From sequence record OP991903.1: 64,000 bases of DNA; one strand, given 5' to 3'. The notes beneath the pieces were generated by a model. The model did no database searches. It was given only the letters and a program-made list of their open reading frames with translations, and had not been told where the DNA came from. A program made the translations under genes and the position numbers. This document shows positions 9,422 to 52,186 of the stretch, in pieces. Numbering within the stretch: the stretch's first letter is position 1; each line of letters starts with the position of its first letter.

Positions 9422-10285
9422 TTACACCATTGCGTTCTTCGCGGCAGTCATGGAGCTCAGGTAACCGGTATCCGCAGACTTGACGTCCGCTTCAATCGCC
9501 TGGAGCCATGCACGACGTTGAGACGGGTCGATACCTGTCTGGTTCGCCGTGTCCAGCAGCTGCTGACCAAGCTTACGCACGCCAGCACCAACCTGTTGCA
9601 GGCAGGTGAAGCCGATGGAGTGGGTAACGTTCTCTGGGGTTTCCGTGATGTCACGAGAACCTTCGATTTTCGCACCGGCACGTGGCATCATGTTGGTACA
9701 CAGCCACGCTTCCACAACGTACTTCTGCGTTGGGTCTGGTTCCACGAACAGTACGGTGAAGGCCGTGTAGTCCGGGTACAAACCGTATGGCGTGTTACGG
9801 CCACGGGCAACAACAGCAGGGACGTTGGTGTCAGGGTTACCCAGCAGGTTAATGATGTAATCCTGCCAGAACCATTTCACCGGAGTACCGATTTTCTCCA
9901 CCCATTCGAACTGTGGCTGAGAACGGGCACGTTTGACTTTCGCCAGCGTTTCCATTTCTTCGCCCGCAGCACCGAACGGCGTGCTCACGTATTCCACTTC
10001 GAGCGACTGGTCAAGACCAGTGATGCGGCGAGGGTGCAATTCGATGAGCGCCTTCAGAGCAGCCACACGCTTGTCCGGGTCGTTCAAATCCTGGAAGCCC
10101 GCTGGGGCCTCCATCAGGAAAGGAATGACCGGACGGCGGGTGTAATCCGCCGCAGCATGGTAGAACTCCAGGTTGTTGGTGTAACCACCCTGTCCCGGGA
10201 TTTCCAGACTCGTCACGGGACCGTAGGTCCCCTTAGAGTAGGATTCGCCGGAGTTCATGATGGTATTCGGGTCTTTCTTAGCCAT
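9422..10285 (-). CDS. Tail tube protein (phiKZ gp30-like)
   Basis: Start MAKKDPN overlaps the sheath stop; ~287 aa; VLFVEPDPTQKYVVEAWLCTNMMP motif; directly downstream of the sheath gene. Confidence 0.8.
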   Translation of the reverse strand: MAKKDPNTIMNSGESYSKGTYGPVTSLEIPGQGGYTNNLEFYHAAADYTRRPVIPFLMEAPAGFQDLNDPDKRVAALKALIELHPRRITGLDQSLEVEYVSTPFGAAGEEMETLAKVKRARSQPQFEWVEKIGTPVKWFWQDYIINLLGNPDTNVPAVVARGRNTPYGLYPDYTAFTVLFVEPDPTQKYVVEAWLCTNMMPRAGAKIEGSRDITETPENVTHSIGFTCLQQVGAGVRKLGQQLLDTANQTGIDPSQRRAWLQAIEADVKSADTGYLSSMTAAKNAMV

Positions 10286-12359
10286 TGTCTTCCAGCTCCT
10301 CACGACGGTAGGCCACAACAGAGGCGTTCAGAACGGTACGCATACCGCTCACCCCGATGTCAGTGCGCAGAGTCCAGCTGTAACCGTTGTCATCGTCGAG
10401 ACGAGTGATTTCGGCGTGCGGCTTGGCAATCATACGGCCGTTCGGAATGTTCGCGGCGATGCGAGCAGCAATCTGCTTCTCGGACCGTTCTACCAGCTGT
10501 GCATCGGTCAGGTTCTGGTTACCCGTATAGGAACGCCAGACTTCCCACGCATAGCGGTTGATGTTGGCCACGCAGAGACCCACCAACGCAGAACGCAGTA
10601 CCGAGGTCTGGTCTGGGTAGAAGGACTGGATGCCAGAGTAGAACTGCGAACGGGTGTCGTAGTCCTCCACGTAGCAAATACCAGCCATCCACTGACGACG
10701 CTTCACGCGATACGACATGTCGAGGTTGGAGATGTTCTTGGTGCGCTGAACGATACGGTTGTCACCGTTATCCGGTGCACTGTCTTCATCCAGGCGGCCA
10801 GTTGGGTCTTTGCCCCAGTCGCAGAACTTACGGTACAGGTCAATGCCCTGCACACAAGCAATCTTACGCTGAGCGCCTACCCAAAGCGCAGAGTGACCAG
10901 CAATCAGACCACGGAAGGACTGAGTGTTGAACTCCACGGAATCCGGGTACTGCTGCAAACGGGTCATCAGCGACAGGGCGATTGACTCATCCGTAGCTTC
11001 GTCGTTCGCAGGCAGGCTGATATCCTGTGTACTGAGGCCAATCCAGCAGTCCGGACGAGCGGTCAGCAGTTTCGGGAACAGCAGCTTGGTGTCCATGTCG
11101 AACCCGGTGTCCCACACGGCGTTGAACGGATAACGCGCGAGGTTAGACAGGCGGTAAACACCATCAACGTCAGTCAGGATTTTATTCACTGCCTGGTTGA
11201 AAGTTTTGTTCGTCATGGTACCGGTACCACCACCTTGCAGGTAATGCGTGGTGTTGGCGGTCAGCGCGACTGCACCGTTCAGCACACCCTGGATAACCAG
11301 AGAGTGGTACGGGATACCGTCGATGCTTTGTGCACTGATGAAGTTCATCTGGTGCAGGGTTTCTTCCACGGTGCCGATTGGCATCGTGTCAGTGAACGCC
11401 GATTCGTTAGCCTGAACTTTCGCCAGGAACGCTTCGAGGTTAGTCTGATAGTAATTCACAGTACCAACCGGTGGGCGTTGCATGGTGTCGATTGCATCGT
11501 CGGTCCAACGGCCCGGGATACGCTCGTTCAAGTCGTAAATCGTGTTACCCGCATCTTTATCCACCACGTTCTCTTTGAAGGAGAACAGGATGCTGGTTTC
11601 GTCGTAGGTCGTGGCGACCGCAGACGGGGATGAGAGTTCATCCGCACGCTTCATGAACTGGAAGCGATACAGGCGGGTACCCAGGGTTTCTTCTTTGTCC
11701 GCATCGGCCGGAATCGCAGAAGAAGTGGTCGGGGCCCAGAGACGAATACCGAACTTGCTACCGTCACCGAAGTCCAGGGCTTCGAAGTCGAGCAGAGGCA
11801 TTAACACCGATTTGGTGCTGCCGTCTTCTGACTCCATGGAACCTTCACCGACTTTACGACGACCGAGGAGGGACCCTTCTGCGTCAGTACCGACAGGTGC
11901 AACCACGAACTTCATGATGATGCCCGGGGTTGTGGTACCAGTTTCCTGGCGATTACCGTTGTCGTCCAGGTCGAAAGAACCGTCAGCTTTACGCTTGTAT
12001 TCTGGGACCGGGGTTTCCAGGTAATCAATGGACAGACCCAGGTTGGATTTGTCCGGCATGTCTTCCGGCGTAACGCGGATACTGACAAACCGGGACACAG
12101 CGTCAATAGCCTCGTTAAGGAACGGGGTGGAGTGGGTAGCGAAGGCCGAGTTAACGTCCAACGCATCCGCGCCGTAAAACTCTGCGAACTGAGCAGTGCT
12201 CAGATATTGCGGAGTGGTATCGCCTTGCGGCGAGAAGAAGAAATGGAGCGGGCGGTGAAACGCGAGCGCTTCTGCCACTCCTGTAGCTCGGTTCCCACTG
12301 ACGTCTTTTGTCCCTCGAAAATTAACGCCAGGAGTTGAGCTGGTAATGACCTCGGCCAT
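10278..12359 (-). CDS. Contractile tail sheath protein (phiKZ gp29-like)
   Basis: 693 aa (phiKZ sheath is about the same size); YPFNAVWDTGFDMDTK motif; synteny tube-sheath<>structural-structural-structural-terminase. Confidence 0.85.
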   Translation of the reverse strand: MAEVITSSTPGVNFRGTKDVSGNRATGVAEALAFHRPLHFFFSPQGDTTPQYLSTAQFAEFYGADALDVNSAFATHSTPFLNEAIDAVSRFVSIRVTPEDMPDKSNLGLSIDYLETPVPEYKRKADGSFDLDDNGNRQETGTTTPGIIMKFVVAPVGTDAEGSLLGRRKVGEGSMESEDGSTKSVLMPLLDFEALDFGDGSKFGIRLWAPTTSSAIPADADKEETLGTRLYRFQFMKRADELSSPSAVATTYDETSILFSFKENVVDKDAGNTIYDLNERIPGRWTDDAIDTMQRPPVGTVNYYQTNLEAFLAKVQANESAFTDTMPIGTVEETLHQMNFISAQSIDGIPYHSLVIQGVLNGAVALTANTTHYLQGGGTGTMTNKTFNQAVNKILTDVDGVYRLSNLARYPFNAVWDTGFDMDTKLLFPKLLTARPDCWIGLSTQDISLPANDEATDESIALSLMTRLQQYPDSVEFNTQSFRGLIAGHSALWVGAQRKIACVQGIDLYRKFCDWGKDPTGRLDEDSAPDNGDNRIVQRTKNISNLDMSYRVKRRQWMAGICYVEDYDTRSQFYSGIQSFYPDQTSVLRSALVGLCVANINRYAWEVWRSYTGNQNLTDAQLVERSEKQIAARIAANIPNGRMIAKPHAEITRLDDDNGYSWTLRTDIGVSGMRTVLNASVVAYRREELEDNG

Positions 12360-12528
12360 AGTTCAATACTCCAACTAATTAGTGGATAACGCAGTATGTA
12401 CATATTACGTCATACTAATTCGTGCTTTCGGCGAGTGAAAAAGTACGACGAGCTATAATAGTGCGTTTTCTTGTGCGTCATTCCCCTTCTTTTTTTGCCC
12501 CTTTCAGTTCTAATGGAGAATAATTACC

Positions 12529-13446
12529 ATGTTTAAAAGTGCGTACGAAACGACGTCTGGCTCCTCGTTTTTTGATGCTACGCTGAGCCGTCGTTTGATT
12601 TTAGCTCGGGCAGAAGGGGTACTGACCAACTCGGTAGTCGACGGTTGTCCAGACCTGTACGCCGTTCTCGAGTCTGATGCGCGTAGCAAAGACATCCCTA
12701 CGTTCGAACACCCGGTGCGGGTTGAAGAACCAGGGCGTCCAGAGTATTGGGTCATTGACCTGCGTTCCCATGCTGGGAAGATTCGTGCCAACGGTGGGAA
12801 GCTGCCGATGGAAGGCGGTTCCGGTATTCTGGTGAAACGTACCCTGCTGGAAATCTACTGGAACAAATTCGGTGGGCTGGCTGTGCAACACGCTGGGGAC
12901 TTACCGATGGCGGTTTACGCACGCTGGTTATCCGGTCTGTTGTCTACCCGCTGTAACCTGGATGCGGCAGTGCAAGCCCAGGTCCTGCTTCTGGCTGCTT
13001 TCTATTACTGCTGCCAGCACATCGAGAAAGACCGCCTGACCGAAAAACAATGTGAAGCTTTCTGTCTGCGTATTTCTCGTGCCCTGCGCGTGAACCCTTC
13101 CGACGTGATTCGTTTCCTGAGTCAGGTTAACTACATGGATAACCTGGGTGAGTTCTGCGATGAACTGAAAGCCCGGGTGTACTCGAAGTCGCTGAGCATT
13201 GTCGACTCGCGCTTCATTTACACCATCACCATGACCAGTTGGTTCGGTGGTACGGATGCCCGTGCGCTGATTGCAGCGGCATTGGAATTCCCGCCGGTGT
13301 TCATTGCGCTGGTGTTGGCGGCCGGTAAAGAACCGCTGTACCGCAAAACGACGCTGTCGGAAATCGTGAAACGCGAAGGTCGTCAGCACAACTACGCTCA
13401 GTATGCCCATATCGTCGAAGGTCTGCTGCGTGAACTGAAAAAGTGA
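12529..13446 (+). CDS. Virion structural protein (phiKZ gp28 position)
   Basis: 305 aa, GGAG RBS, divergent from the sheath gene in the conserved phiKZ-like order. Confidence 0.6.
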   Translation: MFKSAYETTSGSSFFDATLSRRLILARAEGVLTNSVVDGCPDLYAVLESDARSKDIPTFEHPVRVEEPGRPEYWVIDLRSHAGKIRANGGKLPMEGGSGILVKRTLLEIYWNKFGGLAVQHAGDLPMAVYARWLSGLLSTRCNLDAAVQAQVLLLAAFYYCCQHIEKDRLTEKQCEAFCLRISRALRVNPSDVIRFLSQVNYMDNLGEFCDELKARVYSKSLSIVDSRFIYTITMTSWFGGTDARALIAAALEFPPVFIALVLAAGKEPLYRKTTLSEIVKREGRQHNYAQYAHIVEGLLRELKK

Positions 13447-23190: not shown

Positions 23191-23206
23191 TATATTATCA
23201 GCATGA
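23191..23206 (+). promoter_or_regulatory. Putative early promoter
   Basis: TATATTATCAGCATGA ahead of the 23.2-27.2 kb operon. Confidence 0.55.
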
Positions 23207-36740: not shown

Positions 36741-37175
36741 ATGTTAGACCGTAACGGCAACCAGTACGACCCGAACCAGTTCTTTCACAGTACCCCTATC
36801 AAAGCCGGTACTGCCAACAAGGACGTTAAGAAACCTCGGGTCACCAAAGTGAAGGAGGTTCTCACCGAGAAAGAATGTCCGTGCTGTAAAGAACAGCTCG
36901 ACATTGCGGAGTTCACGTTCCGCGACAAAATTTACAAGTACTGCACCACCTGTAGGGAAACCACCGCCATAACCAACGACCGCCTCATCCGTGAAGAATT
37001 TAAAAGTAATCCACTGATGGTCTTTGTCCCCGACAATATTCGGCTGGCTAAATGTCAAGGTTGCGGTCGGGTTAACCCTGTTATCTCTGATTTCCCTGTT
37101 AACTTAACAACCATAACAGGGTTTGGTAAATACTGCCAACCAAACTGTAAGGGTAAGAAACCATGTCCTCGTTAA
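36741..37175 (+). CDS. Double zinc-finger protein
   Basis: Start MLDRNG (AAGGA RBS); CPCC...YCTTC and CQGC...YCQPNC. Confidence 0.7.
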   Translation: MLDRNGNQYDPNQFFHSTPIKAGTANKDVKKPRVTKVKEVLTEKECPCCKEQLDIAEFTFRDKIYKYCTTCRETTAITNDRLIREEFKSNPLMVFVPDNIRLAKCQGCGRVNPVISDFPVNLTTITGFGKYCQPNCKGKKPCPR

Positions 37176-37630
37176 TGACAGTCACTATTCGCCTATCAGA
37201 AGGGAAGCTGCGCGAAATCTCCGTCATTGGTACTGATGAGAAACGCAGTGTTCTCCTTCGCATGAGCCATAACGCTCGCCACATGCCTTACTCCGCGGTT
37301 GTCCTCACCGACGCCGGTCTGGAGGTTTTTCAATTAACCCGTAACAGCCCAGGTAAAATTCATCGCATCAGCCATTACGCTGAAGTCATCCGTGATGACC
37401 TGAAGAACAACTACGGTCTGACCTTTGACGCCATCGTCTGGGGTTCCCCAACCGTTGTTTCCATTGACGACGAAGAATGGCTTGCCTTCTCCGACCGTCC
37501 CATCATCAGTCGCAGCGGTAAGCTAAGCGACTACTTCCGCCAGGCGCTGCAAGAACACAACGCCACCGGGACTGACCCGGAACGCGTGTTTGGGTTTGCG
37601 CAATCTATCTTCCGCAACATCGCGGCATAA
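37163..37630 (+). CDS. Hypothetical protein
   Basis: 155 aa, overlaps previous stop. Confidence 0.65.
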   Translation: MSSLMTVTIRLSEGKLREISVIGTDEKRSVLLRMSHNARHMPYSAVVLTDAGLEVFQLTRNSPGKIHRISHYAEVIRDDLKNNYGLTFDAIVWGSPTVVSIDDEEWLAFSDRPIISRSGKLSDYFRQALQEHNATGTDPERVFGFAQSIFRNIAA

Positions 37631-38910: not shown

Positions 38911-39457
38911 ACCGAAAGGCTTTCAGCGCACAGTGGCCAGCTACACCGAGTGGGCACCACCCCTCACCAGCGATGCTCGCCGCCAGACTAGTACCCCTAA
39001 TCCAATCAATGAAGCACTACTCAAGCAACCGCGCTCCTCTAATGGACCATTGGTACCCCAGGTGGCGTTCGACGCCGTAACGAAGGACTGGGCGCGTCTG
39101 TACCCCGATAAGAAGCTGGACAAGGAGATGCACTACCAACTGGCTCTCCGTAAACACCTGGCATTCGAAAAGCAACACCCCATGGTGTCTGGAAAACTGG
39201 TTTTCGAAATGAAGGCCACCCACGGGTTACCGTTCGACGTTATCTTCGGGCAGATTATTCTGGAGCGCAACAGTCGCGTTAACTGGGTAGAGTTCGTCGA
39301 CACCGCGTTAGAAAACGGCTGGCTCATCAATAACATCGTCGTCTCCGTCCGCGCTGGACTGGAAGACGCCAGCATCCATCGTGAATACATTGACGCGGTT
39401 ATCCAACGCATCAAACTGTATATCACTAAAAAGTTTGAGGTAGAGAATGCGCATTAA
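38897..39457 (+). CDS. Hypothetical protein with alanyl-tRNA synthetase helical-domain-like segment
   Basis: VSGKLVFEMKATHGLPFDVIF..I.LE....VNWVEF resembles the AlaRS LSG..AF.LYDTYGFP.DLT..I..E....VD...F motif. Confidence 0.5.
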   Translation: MKKNKPKGFQRTVASYTEWAPPLTSDARRQTSTPNPINEALLKQPRSSNGPLVPQVAFDAVTKDWARLYPDKKLDKEMHYQLALRKHLAFEKQHPMVSGKLVFEMKATHGLPFDVIFGQIILERNSRVNWVEFVDTALENGWLINNIVVSVRAGLEDASIHREYIDAVIQRIKLYITKKFEVENAH

Positions 39458-40229
39458 AGAAGTTACGAAAGAAGAGTTCTTCAAATACCTGGAAAAGCTA
39501 GACGATTGCCCCGATTGTCAACTGTCTGCCTCCAACTGGGGCGAGGTGGCAAAGGACGAACACGGCGATGTCGTCTTAACCTTGGCAGAAGTGAAAGCTT
39601 GGTATGGCGCACGGTTCTTTGTCCGTACCGGTGAAGCGTATTACGAGCACTTGTACGTAGTGCGGCTATCAGACGAAGATGATAGTTGGGAGGATAAATT
39701 CTCCCGTCCAAACACGCATTGGTATCATTTCCAGGGTAACTGTTGGACCGGGGATAAAAGTGAACCGTGGCCGTTCGAGATGAGTCTGCACATGCATGGC
39801 GAACATGTGAACATGCGCCGTACTGTCATCTTTGAAGGGTCTGGGTATGATGAAGACCGTCCGTTCGAAGACCTGGTGAAAGTCATGGGTGATTTAGCTA
39901 ACGTCTATCGTCTGGTCGGCCTGTCCGAAGTGGAGTATCGTGACGTCGAACTCCGCTTAGAACAAGGACTGGCTGCCCCAGAATGGAAATACTTTGATAA
40001 GCGTTCCTTGAATCGTCCTCTCGCCGCCGGAACAAAGGTTTACATTGACGATGAAGAACTGACCGTTCACTACGAAACCCGCCAGATGGGCGGGGGTCAT
40101 GGTGAAGGACGTTGGATGGGACAGGTGGTCACCTTGAAGAACCGCGATGGAGCCCCGGTTAACTTCTACAACCGCCTCATCAAAGCGAAGATACCAGTGG
40201 ATACTCGTCGGTTCAACCCTAATCGGTAA
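39447..40229 (+). CDS. Hypothetical protein
   Basis: 260 aa, GAGG RBS. Confidence 0.7.
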   Translation: MRIKEVTKEEFFKYLEKLDDCPDCQLSASNWGEVAKDEHGDVVLTLAEVKAWYGARFFVRTGEAYYEHLYVVRLSDEDDSWEDKFSRPNTHWYHFQGNCWTGDKSEPWPFEMSLHMHGEHVNMRRTVIFEGSGYDEDRPFEDLVKVMGDLANVYRLVGLSEVEYRDVELRLEQGLAAPEWKYFDKRSLNRPLAAGTKVYIDDEELTVHYETRQMGGGHGEGRWMGQVVTLKNRDGAPVNFYNRLIKAKIPVDTRRFNPNR

Positions 40230-40240
40230 TAAAGCAGAAT

Positions 40241-41209: not shown

Positions 41210-42178
41210 ATGAGCTCACGTAACACCGTTTCCATCTATGGCTGTGGCGGCACTGGTATCAACATTGTCAGCCTGCTGATGAAGAAAAACCTCGCGGGTC
41301 TGGCCGAAGTGAAAGCCCACTTCGTCGATACCTCTCGTTCAAACTTTAGCGCCATCGGCGGTTCCAACTTCCGTGATGAAGACTGCTATATCATCCCGGG
41401 TGCAACCGACGGTTCTGGCAAAGAGCGCAGCACCAACTATCACCCTATCGCCCGTGCCATCCCAGACGTGCTGGTCAGCCACCCTGCCGGTGACCTGAAC
41501 ATTCTGGTGTTCTCAGGCGGTGGCGGTTCCGGTTCTGTTATTGGACCGAAACTGGCCGAAGAACTGTTGCGCCAGAAAAAACCAACCGTGTTCTTTGTGG
41601 TAGGTTCTGCGGAAAACTCCCAGACCACCAAAAACACCATGGATACCTGGCAGACCCTGAACGGTATCGCGAAGAAGAACGAATCCACTGCGGTCGTCTT
41701 CTACGAAGATAACGGTTCTGTGGCACAGGACAACGACGTTGATGCGCAGATGGTTCTGGGCCTGCTGTCTATCCTTGACCTGTACTCTGGCGAACACGAC
41801 CGTCTCGACAGCTCTGACGTCCACCGTTTCTTCAACGTGAAAAATGGCCCAGGCGTTGCGCTGCTGGACATCACCCCAGACTACAGCCATGCGAAGTCAC
41901 TGCCATACCCACTGGCGGTTGCCAGCCTGCACGGTTCAGTCGACGGTGCCAACCCATCCCTGCCGTCTGAGTACGGTTGTGAAGGGTATCGCCGCGTAGC
42001 TGAAAAGAACGACCTGCACTTCATCATCTACACCCAAGACCTGGCGGGTGTGATTGCAGGCCTGCAAAAGACAGTGGACAACTTCGAAGCGCTGGCCCGT
42101 GCCCGTAAACAACGTGAGAGCGTTGACGTGCTGGATACCGCTGGTCTGAACGACGACGGCTTTAAATTCTCTTCGTAA
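41210..42178 (+). CDS. phuZ: PhuZ phage tubulin (tubulin/FtsZ family GTPase)
   Basis: GCGGTGINI T1 loop, DTS, GSGKERS, GGGGSGSVIG tubulin signature, acidic/aromatic C-tail; synteny with the nucleus block. Confidence 0.95.
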   Translation: MSSRNTVSIYGCGGTGINIVSLLMKKNLAGLAEVKAHFVDTSRSNFSAIGGSNFRDEDCYIIPGATDGSGKERSTNYHPIARAIPDVLVSHPAGDLNILVFSGGGGSGSVIGPKLAEELLRQKKPTVFFVVGSAENSQTTKNTMDTWQTLNGIAKKNESTAVVFYEDNGSVAQDNDVDAQMVLGLLSILDLYSGEHDRLDSSDVHRFFNVKNGPGVALLDITPDYSHAKSLPYPLAVASLHGSVDGANPSLPSEYGCEGYRRVAEKNDLHFIIYTQDLAGVIAGLQKTVDNFEALARARKQRESVDVLDTAGLNDDGFKFSS

Positions 42179-42209
42179 GAGAACCGTTCGCGGTTTAGTC
42201 TATTATATG

Positions 42210-42490
42210 TACAAATATGCAAGCTAACGTAGTTGTTCTCTGGATGGAATAGCTGCGGGGTGTCTGGTCAACACCTGCGTGCAGAGGTACCCCAAAAAAC
42301 CCAAGCTGCTTAACTGCGGCCATTAAGTTCCCAGCGGGGAACGTTGATTAACCACTCCTAGGAAACAGCTGCGCTGAACCCGACCGAGTATAGGTTAACA
42401 TGACAAGACTAAGATACCTGGTTACCCACACAATCGGCTTACGAGCGCGAGCGGTGAGGTAACCAGAATATCTTCTTTTATTTTCTTTTC
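42210..42490 (+). ncRNA. Candidate structured non-coding RNA
   Basis: ORF-free, at least five nested or adjacent helices and a terminal long hairpin plus U-tract; upstream TATG motif. No family recognised; strand assumed from the U-tract. Confidence 0.5.
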
Positions 42491-42512
42491 CTAACTAACA
42501 GAGTTTAAAGGA

Positions 42513-42528
42513 TATATTATCCAGATGA
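42513..42528 (+). promoter_or_regulatory. Putative early promoter
   Basis: TATATTATCCAGATGA ahead of the small-gene/DNA polymerase operon. Confidence 0.55.
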
Positions 42529-42662
42529 ATACAAATTCAGGAAACCGCCTGTATTAAATTCTACGCGGTTTTCTCTGTTATGTGGAACCTTGTATAGGGC
42601 GGATAGTTTAAAGCGCTCAGCGAGGGTTGTGGAGATGATTATGGCGAACCGAGAGGCGTTAC

Positions 42663-42977
42663 ATGAGATTCACCGTTGAGTGTCACGGGCGACTCAGTTT
42701 TATAGAAGAGGTATGCTACGAACTCATTGACGGGGAAAATTATAACCTGCTGGATATCCTGCTGTACATCTTGGTTAAGGACAACGACCTGATTGTGGAC
42801 GGCTTCGACCATCGAGCCATCGGCGGCGGGGAGTTATTCGTGGCCGAGAAAGTGCGCAACATTTACGGTAAACGCGCCATGCATTTGCCGTCGTATGTCC
42901 ACGCAGTGAAGGACCCGAAGTTGAGCTGTGGGTTCTTGAGCATGACGGAGGTAGATGTACGTGATTACTGGACATAG
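42663..42977 (+). CDS. Small hypothetical protein
   Basis: 104 aa, GAGG RBS. Confidence 0.65.
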   Translation: MRFTVECHGRLSFIEEVCYELIDGENYNLLDILLYILVKDNDLIVDGFDHRAIGGGELFVAEKVRNIYGKRAMHLPSYVHAVKDPKLSCGFLSMTEVDVRDYWT

Positions 42978-49964: not shown

Positions 49965-50088
49965 GACGCCCCCAGTACAGTAATCATTTTTTACGTTACT
50001 GTATATATCTTATGTAGAAAGTATTGCCATCCAGAATGGCAATGCTGGATTAACGGGAGTAAGTGCCTTTTGAAACTTTTTTCAGGCA

Positions 50089-50215: not shown

Positions 50216-52186
50216 ATGGGTTGGAATTCTGGTGATAGTGAACACGGTAATAAGGATGAAGGTGAAGGTAAACGCCAAAACCCGCCTAACCCGTTAGCTC
50301 AGTATCGCCAACACCAGAGTGCCAAAAAGCACTCGCAGCAGCAACCGAATACCCAAGCGTCAGCTCCTCACGAAGAAGAAGTTGTCGCAGCTCGTCATGT
50401 ACCACAAACCGAAACTAATACAGAAGCCTATAAAGGGAAAACTGCAATGAACGATATCCTGAACATGTTCAATCCTGGTCAACCGCTGATTCAGTCTGCC
50501 GCTGGCGGCGACGAGATGGGTAAATTCATCGACGCGGGTAACAAGTTCCTCGAAGCGAACAAAAACCGTCTGAGCATGGGTGGCAAAACTAAGTGGCAGC
50601 TGATTCCGGTTCCGGGTCATCTGACTGGTTTCCAGCTGGACTCAGTTGTCCTGGCTGCGGCCTTTACTTACGGCGACGTGAAATTCGTCGGCGCAATCAC
50701 TGCGGTCATGATGGGTCGCCAGCAGCTGCCTAAGCAAGAAGTGACTGAAGGTCAGCGCCGTTACGTGTTCTCTGCGGTACCGAGCGATGTGTGGACCGAA
50801 GGCTTCAAAGGTTCCGTCATCAATCAGGTGCAGAAAAACGTGGGCCTGGGTGCTGATGTACCGGTTGTCCTCTTCGGTGCGGTAACCGTTCCAGTCACCT
50901 TCGGTTACTCCGAGCGTGAAGTGGATGAAGTTATCACCAACCTGATTAACACCGCAGCGTACAGCATGTACGATGAGCTGACTCAGGGTGACCACCAGTT
51001 CAAGCTGGAAGATATCATTCCAGAGAACTACGAAGTCAGCGGTCGCGTAACTTACGCACCGGGTGATGACTCTACCGTCTTTGGCGAACCACTGCGTCGT
51101 GACCTGTCTCTGCAAGTCACTACCGGTCCTGCGGGCCGCAAAGGTCAGGTAAACGCCCTGGAAGGTAACCGTAACTCTAACCTGGTGCAGATTGACGGTT
51201 TCACCGACTACATCTACCTGGGTCCAAAAGATGGCGGTCGTCGTCGTGGCGGTAGCCGTGCGCGCCGTCGTGAAGTTGATGAGCTGGACATCTACGCACT
51301 GGGTCTGAACCTGACCAAGATTGCGTCCAACAACAACTTCACTACCGAGATGAACCTGCTGGGTCTGTCCACCGTATCGGCTCTGATGCGTGAAGACTGC
51401 CTGGTGAAATCTCTGCGCCCGGTTGGCGATTCTGCTGACCTGCGTGATGCACGTGCTCTGGAAGTTGAGCAGCTGGTCGAGTTTGACCCGCCGATTCCAG
51501 CTGACCCATCAGAAGTTGAGTGGGCTGAGCTGAACGAAGCGGTCGTTCAGGAAGATTCTCTGAACGTCTTCCTGCACATCGAAAAATCCGGCCTGCAAAC
51601 GCGTACCCAGCGTCTGTACCTGGAAGCGGCTGACGATAAGCACCCGAACCACCGTCAGGCTCGTATCCAGCTGTGGGAAGCGGCACACCGTCTGACCGGC
51701 GGCGTCATCGAAGATTACCTCGATGAAGCTACTCCGTTCGGTGCTCTGGAAGAGCGCATCATCCTGCTGGGCCACTGGACCGATTCTAAAGGTCGTATCC
51801 GTGACCTGCGTGAACTGGACCGTTTCTTCATGATGACCCACTTCGGTCTGGCGAAGAATCGCGACCTCGAAGCGATTGCCATGTGGGATGACGCGTGCTG
51901 GAACCGCAACATCAGCGAAGAAGCACGTCTGGCGAAAATGGAAGAAATCATCGCTTCCGTTACCGGCAGCTACACCATCACTGGTCATGCGTACCTGGTT
52001 CAGATTAACCCTGACTGGCTGTACAAACTGACTCAGGCGGTGGATAAAGCTGGCCTGACCATCCCGACTGAAGGTCTGCTGCAAGACAGCGTTCGTCGTG
52101 GTTACTTCGACAACCGTTTCGGCGGTTCCGGTAACTACAACGGTAACACCTTCAACTCTCGTGGCGGTTACGGCTTCGGTCGCTAA
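50216..52186 (+). CDS. chmA: Chimallin, phage nuclear shell protein (ChmA/PhuN; phiKZ gp54-like)
   Basis: 656 aa, strongly biased codons, TAAGGAG RBS, disordered N-terminus and Gly/Asn/aromatic C-tail; diagnostic position directly upstream of the nvRNAP beta' gene and downstream of DNA polymerase. Confidence 0.85.
   Translation: MGWNSGDSEHGNKDEGEGKRQNPPNPLAQYRQHQSAKKHSQQQPNTQASAPHEEEVVAARHVPQTETNTEAYKGKTAMNDILNMFNPGQPLIQSAAGGDEMGKFIDAGNKFLEANKNRLSMGGKTKWQLIPVPGHLTGFQLDSVVLAAAFTYGDVKFVGAITAVMMGRQQLPKQEVTEGQRRYVFSAVPSDVWTEGFKGSVINQVQKNVGLGADVPVVLFGAVTVPVTFGYSEREVDEVITNLINTAAYSMYDELTQGDHQFKLEDIIPENYEVSGRVTYAPGDDSTVFGEPLRRDLSLQVTTGPAGRKGQVNALEGNRNSNLVQIDGFTDYIYLGPKDGGRRRGGSRARRREVDELDIYALGLNLTKIASNNNFTTEMNLLGLSTVSALMREDCLVKSLRPVGDSADLRDARALEVEQLVEFDPPIPADPSEVEWAELNEAVVQEDSLNVFLHIEKSGLQTRTQRLYLEAADDKHPNHRQARIQLWEAAHRLTGGVIEDYLDEATPFGALEERIILLGHWTDSKGRIRDLRELDRFFMMTHFGLAKNRDLEAIAMWDDACWNRNISEEARLAKMEEIIASVTGSYTITGHAYLVQINPDWLYKLTQAVDKAGLTIPTEGLLQDSVRRGYFDNRFGGSGNYNGNTFNSRGGYGFGR

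Follow-up and report, generated by a model that had tools for sequence, protein, structure and literature searches.

The stretch of DNA analysed here (hereafter the window) comprises 64,000 nucleotides of the genome of Erwinia phage vB_Ea277G (OP991903.1; Ea277G in the following), a nucleus-forming jumbo phage of Iapetusvirus, and its coordinates correspond to those of the record minus 62000. The tubulin-like gene phuZ (41210-42178, + strand, 322 aa) is followed by a gap of 484 nt (42179-42662), the longest ORF-free gap in the window, and the next annotated gene is the first ORF of an operon on the same strand (42663-42977, +), which encodes 104 aa belonging to no family. An initial annotation, made from the letters of this DNA, had named the upstream gene phuZ and the phage a nucleus-forming one; the former is confirmed by RefSeq, where a PhiEaH1 protein of 100% identity is annotated as 'tubulin PhuZ', and the latter by a nuclear shell protein gene at 50216-52186. 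The close relatives of Ea277G are limited to PhiEaH1 and one IMG/VR contig. Upstream of phuZ, about 800 bp of Ea277G (39427-40230) are absent from PhiEaH1, which has about 10 bp in their place; they contain a 260-aa ORF (39447-40229) with no Pfam match.

The gap had been described as an ORF-free interval of about 480 bp holding a structured RNA, and this description stands. No + strand ORF of at least 30 aa is present in 42179-42662, and the stems, the TATG motif and the U tract that had been described were all found in place when the sequence was checked. The + strand of 42200-42500 folds with an MFE of -94.1 kcal/mol (z -3.53, 0/100 shuffles as good), supporting the view of a non-coding and structured region, and the - strand folds at z -2.33; the + strand MFE structure includes every stem initially described but CTTAA/TTAAG. 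The statement that the region is richer in GC than the other gaps is correct in part, the body of the predicted RNA (264 nt) having 50% GC and the whole gap 45.5%, against 37-55% in the other gaps.

Searches for known RNA classes agree with the earlier impression that no hallmark of a tRNA, tmRNA, RNase P or group I intron is present. Rfam 15 gave no gathering-threshold match in the whole window, the E-value mode returned for 42100-42700 chance matches only (E 3-7, far under the threshold), and ARAGORN predicted no tRNA or tmRNA genes in the window; the corresponding RNAs of the related phages discussed below likewise have no match in Rfam. A blastn search of the region against 50,697 phage records recovered only Ea277G itself and near-identical genomes, and the same search with the PCH45 and SPLA10 RNAs gave only self or near-identical matches and nothing across genera. 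No report of an RNA downstream of phuZ was found in the literature searched.

Three further candidates were considered and set aside. No direct repeats flank positions 42343-42411, as would be expected of a CRISPR mini-array or RNA anti-CRISPR, and a likeness of one hairpin (P3, below) to a CRISPR repeat was dismissed, as a type I-E repeat other than Erwinia's own aligns with it no better than with several coding sites of the window. An antitoxin RNA of a type III toxin-antitoxin system (ToxI-like, with tandem repeats of ~34-45 nt) was rejected, as 42150-42700 contains no direct repeats in tandem or in several copies. The pentamer TTAAC occurs 3 times in 272 nt of the RNA region against 1.16 per kb window-wide, a mild enrichment that was discarded as a hallmark since another part of the window is richer. 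The densest TTAAC/GTTAA cluster of the window lies inside coding sequence at 36900-37340 (6-7 per 280 nt), and no repeat structure was found in it.

Signals bounding the predicted transcript

The predicted RNA opens at a promoter-like initiator, CTATTATATGTAC (42200-42212, +), recognised by a motif scan and the phiKZ TATG rule, with TATG at 42206-42209 and the predicted +1 position at G42209. In phiKZ, TATG is the late promoter of the nvRNAP and its G is the +1 position (PMC4666361; PMC7598289), the non-virion RNA polymerase starting at this G (PMC12809450); the motif is necessary, not sufficient (PMC4666361). As in late promoters of the phiKZ type, the TATG of the gap is intergenic and sense to what follows. 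The longer motif TATGTA[CG] is rare, with a frequency of 0.05-0.2 per kb in the phages compared, and has only four sites in the window, all of them intergenic and sense to the next gene, namely at 12404 (-) for the tail sheath gene, 12395 (+) for its divergent neighbour, 50011 (+) for the nuclear shell protein gene and 42206 (+) in the gap; it is taken here as a putative strong-start motif. In Moabite, FBKp24, KpLz, PCH45 and SA002, too, the equivalent gap begins with this motif, and it lies at most 30 nt from the phuZ stop codon in Iapetusvirus, Moabite, FBKp24, KpLz, SA002 and L016.

Elsewhere in the window, a palindrome, TATGTACATA (12395-12410), lies between the divergently oriented tail sheath gene (10278-12359, -) and phrog_3227 gene (12529-13446, +); with TATGTAC on both strands, it has the look of a strong promoter acting in both directions. 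A hybrid motif, TGTATATATCTTATGTAG, belongs to the nuclear shell gene (50000-50017).

At the other end of the predicted RNA, a long terminal helix of ~24 bp (42413-42472, +; dG ~-27 kcal/mol) is the strongest terminator-type hairpin in the window scan. It is followed directly by the U tract TTCTTTTATTTTCTTTT (42473-42489, +), which is the arrangement of an intrinsic terminator and places the predicted 3' end near 42480; no comparable run of T is found on the - strand. A first, simple terminator scan, in which loops were limited to 3-8 nt, missed this helix, the apical part of which is longer. The usual terminators of Ea277G are 7-bp GGGGAC-TTCG-GTCCCC hairpins (12 canonical), next to which the helix is exceptionally long. 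It is invariant in PhiEaH1, and the RNAs of Moabite, L031 and PCH45 also end in long terminal helices. As regards terminators in general, those of Ea277G itself end in plain T runs, and those of Eowyn (L046 3990-4020), Proteus phage 10 (L047 4105-4135), SA002 (L048 4080-4120) and Goslar (L045 4221-4250) consist of a GC hairpin followed by (T)TATGCCGC, resembling the hairpin-TTAT terminator motif reported for phiKZ (PMC10914365).

Directly after the phuZ stop codon, a scan for terminator-like hairpins identified GAACCG-TTCG-CGGTTT (42181-42196, +), a small hairpin of 6 bp without a U run, whose sole difference in PhiEaH1 is in the loop and which may be a weak phuZ terminator. As this hairpin is weak, phuZ transcripts probably read into the region and part of any signal there could be 3' UTR. 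The hairpin forms the first part of a repeat module, D1, in which a hairpin ending CGCGGTTT is combined with TCTnTTAT(AT)G. This module recurs with 81% identity at 42539-42584 (+) in the leader of ORF 42663 (repeats D1 and I4, the D1 copy at 42564-42584), where a second hairpin (AGGAAACCGC...GCGGTTTTCT) is accompanied by a TTATG module with TATG at 42579-42582. The pairing of hairpin and TTATG motif is unique in the window, and the copy at 42539-42584 may be a second start site or the relic of a duplication.

An early-promoter-like motif, TATATTATC-CAG-ATGA (42513-42530, +), is found 40 nt past the terminal helix, outside the predicted RNA and in the position of a promoter for the downstream operon. 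In these phages, an early promoter is an AT-rich ~10-mer located around position -10 (PMC7598289). The window has four copies of the core TATATTA[TC]C, all of which are intergenic, lie on the + strand and share their flanks; the copies of the extended form TATATTA(T/C)C-N3-(A/G)TGA lie at 23191, 42513, 58347 and 63940 (all +), with a TTAAAG-like element upstream, and are likely to be the early (virion RNA polymerase) promoters of Ea277G. Thus, with a separate early-type promoter downstream, the RNA unit is bracketed. A TATATTAYC-type motif follows the terminator in SPLA10, PCH45, L031, Moabite and KpLz as well, and FBKp24 has a one-base variant, TATATCACC, in this place.

Domains of the predicted RNA and a replaced block

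In the consensus fold of Ea277G and PhiEaH1, a 5' domain (42209-42290, +) is closed by GUAC (42209-42212) pairing with GUAC (42287-42290) and encloses hairpins at 42228-42257 and 42258-42276. The stem formed by GCGGGGTGT (42255-42263) and ACACCTGC (42271-42278) on the + strand, confirmed by the sequence check, lies within its bounds. The 5' domain is identical in the two phages and so offers no covariation test, and no similarity to the related phages was detectable in it.

The following segment (42293-42327, +) was delimited by a covariance model match and covariation (see below) as a conserved module, consisting of an A/C-rich linker, AAAAAACCCAA, a hairpin designated P2 and the sequence CAUUAAG. 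P2, seen in the MFE structure and in the comparison with relatives, is formed by GCUGC (42305-42309), the loop UUAACU and GCGGC (42316-42320) on the + strand. The initially proposed stem between CTTAA (42309-42313, +) and TTAAG (42323-42327, +), both of which are present in the sequence, has to be given up, as it is displaced in the MFE by GCUGC-UUAACU-GCGGC (42305-42320) and it is this rival hairpin that is backed by covariation in the relatives. The next hairpin, P3 (GUUCCC-AGCG-GGGAAC, 42327-42332 with 42337-42342, +), is found in the MFE folds, and its GGGAAC aligns with AGGGAAC/AGGGAAU of L031 and PCH45, in the case of L031 by pairwise alignment.

P3 is followed by a variable block (42343-42411, +), which differs completely in PhiEaH1 and in the IMG/VR relative. 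In the fold of the Ea277G version, which includes a GCUGAA-containing loop, TTAACC and ACTC (42348-42357) pair with GAGT (42386-42389) and GGTTAA (42393-42398) and enclose a CAGC/GCTG hairpin (42366-42376). As a conserved structure this multibranch domain, put forward in the initial annotation, does not survive, lying wholly within the 69 nt that are replaced in PhiEaH1. Over 6.5 kb, Ea277G shares ~98% identity with PhiEaH1, and 1-3 positions differ in every 50 nt; the 69 nt of the block, where TTAACC is kept at the same offset, have ~41 differences. The 415 nt of the gap outside the block carry three differences, of which one falls in the loop of the hairpin that precedes the predicted start, another in the loop of P2 and the third in the U tract. 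The IMG/VR contig carries the PhiEaH1 version, and the two versions fold differently.

Compared with one another and with the downstream leader, the two versions are not significantly alike. A search of the window for sense and antisense matches to either version gave nothing significant, and no donor for either was found in the phage collection. The Ea277G block extends a collinear alignment with L031 (GCUGAA...AGUA), and it may be suggested that Ea277G keeps the ancestral version; this stays only a suggestion, because its basis is the collinear alignment and the block alone is not significant against L031 (z 0.9).

Equivalent loci and the P2 module in related phages

The gene order at the locus, with a phiKZ gp042-like gene on the minus strand, phuZ, the gap and small ORFs, is shared by Moabite, FBKp24, KpLz, SPLA10, PCH45 and metagenomic contigs. 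A promoter-RNA-terminator layout follows phuZ in Moabitevirus and SPLA10, and follows small ORFs that part phuZ from the RNA in PCH45, L032 and L031. In four other jumbo-phage lineages, one of them metagenomic (Moabite/Totoro, SPLA10, PCH45/L032 and L031), the layout comprises a TATG start, 215-330 nt, a long helix with a T-rich tail, and TATATTAYC. The start motif is TATG(TA), with TATGAG in SPLA10 and L031 and with TATGTAG directly before the RNA in PCH45 and L032; the terminal helix with T-rich tail of SPLA10 is weak. No ORF is common to the 215-330 nt units across the lineages. Since phuZ is separated from the RNA by small ORFs in PCH45, L032 and L031, the constant neighbour of the RNA is the downstream early promoter and not phuZ; the description of the RNA as next to phuZ is therefore right as to its position in Ea277G, the tie being positional only. 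A basic ORF of ~29 aa (MPVHYRLPKVSFKPSLMDRLLKRRL...) is conserved immediately 5' of the RNA in PCH45 (L008 3866-3952), L032 (3863-3952) and L031 (3871-3960). In SPLA10 the corresponding position (L007 3436-3534) is occupied by an annotated ORF of 32 aa, and Iapetusvirus has none.

Short units of 65-140 nt, with a promoter and a terminator and without the P2 module, occur in FBKp24, KpLz, SA002 and Proteus phage 10, and conservation in these phages may concern the signals and not an RNA product. Such a region is absent from Eowyn and Goslar, whose phuZ is closed by a short terminator of the ordinary type. PhuZ-anchored scans of IMG/VR and metagenomes yielded no relative between 45% and 100% PhuZ identity, and hence a dense covariation set could not be built. 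The RNA regions of Moabite and Totoro are 86% identical, and the 45 substitutions in Totoro break 14 of the 105 pairs of the Moabite MFE fold, against 20.9 +/- 2.8 expected from random placement (P 0.012), with compensatory changes in four helices. A 30-codon ORF in these two phages is judged not to be coding because it has 6 amino-acid changes between them.

A module of ~35 nt, first spotted by eye and then modelled, is shared across the lineages. It consists of an AAACC-type linker, a hairpin of 3-6 bp with the loop UUAAnU (UUUGGU in PCH45) and an (A)UUAAG-like 3' flank. For the covariance model R2, training segments were hand-picked by eye, with the Ea277G sequence in view, from Moabite, Totoro, SPLA10, L031 and PCH45, no Iapetusvirus sequence being included. 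The best match of R2 in the whole window (both strands, filters off) is 42293-42327, with 22.6 bits and an E-value of 0.0014 that is rough owing to a shortened calibration; the next match has 15.1 bits. As negative controls, other phuZ loci amounting to ~214 kb gave scores of at most 14.3 bits. The initial annotation had proposed covariation across related phages as a check on the RNA, and such covariation is present in P2, the element covered by the formal test: in the model-fitted alignment, compensatory changes are seen at 5/5 pairs, and pairing cells amount to 88.6%, against 62.5 +/- 6.2% in shuffles (0/500) and 31-54% with slid partners.

Searches on a wider scale were less uniform in outcome. 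A wide model, R1, built from PCH45 and L031 only, did not find the Ea277G site even with filters off and found SPLA10 weakly (E 0.38). Sequence-only HMMs built without Moabite did not find the Ea277G site, and those including Moabite ranked it first (E 0.65). In Smith-Waterman comparisons with dinucleotide shuffles, the Ea277G RNA resembles that of L031 over its full length (z 4.2), without the U tracts (z 3.1, 2/500 shuffles) and in the segment from P2 to the block (z 3.5); for comparison, SPLA10 and L031 give z ~4.8, and PCH45 and L031 z 8.9. Pairwise alignment of the Ea277G RNA with those of PCH45, SPLA10 and Moabite shows no significant similarity. A 4-way MAFFT alignment was out of register beyond P2 and was not used.

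Homology of the P2 module across the lineages thus appears likely, and homology over the full length of the RNA plausible. A family of phuZ-downstream RNAs is proposed, comprising those of Iapetusvirus, Moabitevirus, PCH45/L032, L031 and SPLA10. Ea277G is placed in it by the P2 module, with its R2 match (from hand-picked training segments) and covariation, and by its position after the phuZ block together with TATG, the long helix with T-rich tail and TATATTAYC.

Interpretation and comparison with known systems

The reading preferred here, to which we assign a probability of about 0.58, is that the gap holds an independent non-coding RNA gene of ~270 nt. The initial claim of a discrete phage RNA is sustained, as a prediction from sequence signals, in so far as the signals of a transcript are present and analogous or homologous units occur in related phages. 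On this reading, the multisubunit RNA polymerase of the phage would start at G42209 of TATG and produce a structured RNA of ~264 nt, stopping at the helix 42413-42472 and the U tract. The RNA would be modular, consisting of a lineage-specific 5' domain, an A/C-rich linker, P2, the GGGAAC hairpin, a replaceable domain of ~69 nt and the terminal helix. P2 would present the UUAAnU loop on a freely covarying stem, and the very stable terminal helix would protect the 3' end. Probably made in quantity, the RNA would act through a protein reading the P2 loop, the swappable domain serving to tune or diversify its action. Action in trans as a protein-binding RNA appears the most likely mode, because a conserved loop on a stem that changes in sequence with its pairing kept is the usual signature of loop-specific recognition by a protein. 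We infer the use of the promoter and the terminator, the accumulation of the RNA, and its partner and function. The roles of ribozyme, scaffold or ChmC ligand raised in the initial annotation are speculation, and a functional link between the RNA and PhuZ finds no support.

The same signals could, however, act in cis, as a leader or attenuator in which the TATG start, a structured leader and the strong terminator gate middle/late read-through into the operon at 42663, the short RNA being a by-product of premature termination. The unit lies directly 5' of this same-strand operon, the leader of which contains the second hairpin and TATG module, and a start site followed immediately by a terminator is common in the transcriptomes of 201phi2-1 and phiKZ (PMC11512511; PMC10914365); FBKp24, KpLz, SA002 and Proteus phage 10, moreover, keep the promoter and the terminator only. 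Such a role is nevertheless doubtful, as a terminator with a 24-bp helix of -27 kcal/mol hardly lends itself to regulation, ~170 nt and the early promoter separate the terminator from ORF 42663, and P2 is conserved with covariation independently of the terminator. No alternative anti-terminator pairing was seen in a non-exhaustive look, and Rfam gave no match to a riboswitch or leader family and no aptamer family. It is unlikely that the region simply forms the end of the phuZ mRNA, as a long structured 3' UTR with its terminator, and lacks a separate promoter. The weakness of the 6-bp hairpin after the phuZ stop codon, which has no U run, is in keeping with it, as is the fact that the first strong terminator 3' of phuZ is that at 42413-42489. 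Yet small ORFs intervene between phuZ and the RNA in PCH45, L032 and L031, TATGTAG stands right before the RNA in PCH45 and L032, in PCH45 just after the small ORF preceding it, and TATGTA[CG], rare as it is, lies close to the phuZ stop codon in the six lineages or phages named above; no comparable region follows phuZ in Eowyn and Goslar, which have a short terminator of the ordinary kind there.

That a hidden small protein gene explains the region has a very slight probability. One candidate, a 20-codon ORF (42400-42462) with AGG 5 nt before its ATG, shares its frame, C-terminus and stop codon with a 48-codon TTG ORF in PhiEaH1, but the shared part is the terminator helix, which explains its conservation, the start codon and the N-terminus are not conserved, and no ORF of the region recurs in Moabite, PCH45, L031 or SPLA10. 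An element acting at the level of DNA, for instance an origin of replication, a site for packaging or a centromere-like site used by PhuZ, is brought to mind by a long non-coding stretch adjoining a segregation-type tubulin gene and by the three TTAAC copies in 272 nt. It is nonetheless judged very improbable, as there are no iterons or tandem repeats and no GC-skew switch, all the signals are strand-specific, and stems that vary around loops that stay are the opposite of a protein-binding DNA palindrome.

Within the preferred reading of an independent RNA gene, a more far-reaching version, which we regard as rather improbable, may be put forward, in which an abundant trans-acting RNA would combine a constant part, in which P2 and the terminal helix serve as a protein-binding scaffold, with an exchangeable specificity cassette of ~69 nt under diversifying selection. 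Were this true, the RNA could be a decoy or guide directed against a host defence, a host RNA-binding factor or a competing phage, and close phage relatives would differ in the target of their RNA.

Non-coding RNAs of nucleus-forming jumbo phages have barely been explored, with a handful from the phiKZ and 201phi2-1 transcriptomes and none with a function. The present analysis adds a further candidate RNA family, defined by comparative sequence evidence across genera. The rare putative strong-start motif is shared with the tail sheath and nuclear shell genes, and the RNA may thus be abundant. Two phages of ~98% identity that differ by the clean swap of one internal domain provide a natural experiment, and the promoter motifs TATGTA[CG] and TATATTAYC-N3-RTG can be used for the clade. 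Even if the RNA were inert, a mapped promoter-terminator-promoter junction would be useful for the annotation and engineering of Erwinia and Serratia jumbo phages.

Type I 3' UTR sRNAs, such as DapZ and MicL, are transcribed from an internal promoter of their own and act by Hfq-dependent base-pairing through a short seed. The Ea277G RNA is like these in lying 3' of a coding gene on the same strand, with a start signal near the stop codon and a terminator shared with read-through mRNA, but differs in having no seed or target that could be found in the window and in its predicted transcription by the phage's own polymerase. Hairpins with a conserved loop on a free stem are recognised by proteins in the cases of phage lambda boxB, bound by N, and the MS2 operator. 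In P2, likewise, the UUAAnU loop and the flanking sequences are retained and the stem varies with its pairing preserved; the analogy is one of logic only, as P2 has no sequence resemblance to these hairpins and a loop of 6 nt instead of a GNRA-like pentaloop.

The nearest known systems are the small RNAs derived from intergenic regions and 5' UTRs that were identified in phiKZ and 201phi2-1 by ONT-cappable-seq, such as sRNA005 and the sRNA upstream of phiKZ gp182 (PMC10914365; PMC11512511). Like the Ea277G RNA, these are non-coding RNAs of jumbo phages with a phage start site and an intrinsic terminator, conserved in position between genera and with no function assigned. They measure 70-250 nt, lie upstream of the tail gene gp182, PHIKZ221 and PHIKZ302 and have been seen experimentally, whereas the Ea277G RNA is predicted only. 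The latter is set apart from them by locus and features, as it follows phuZ, belongs to an enterobacterial sub-clade only, ends in a helix of atypical length and contains an internal block that can be replaced. Small RNAs of jumbo phages are thus known as a kind, and the phuZ-downstream RNA, with its unusual swap polymorphism, has no report in the literature searched.
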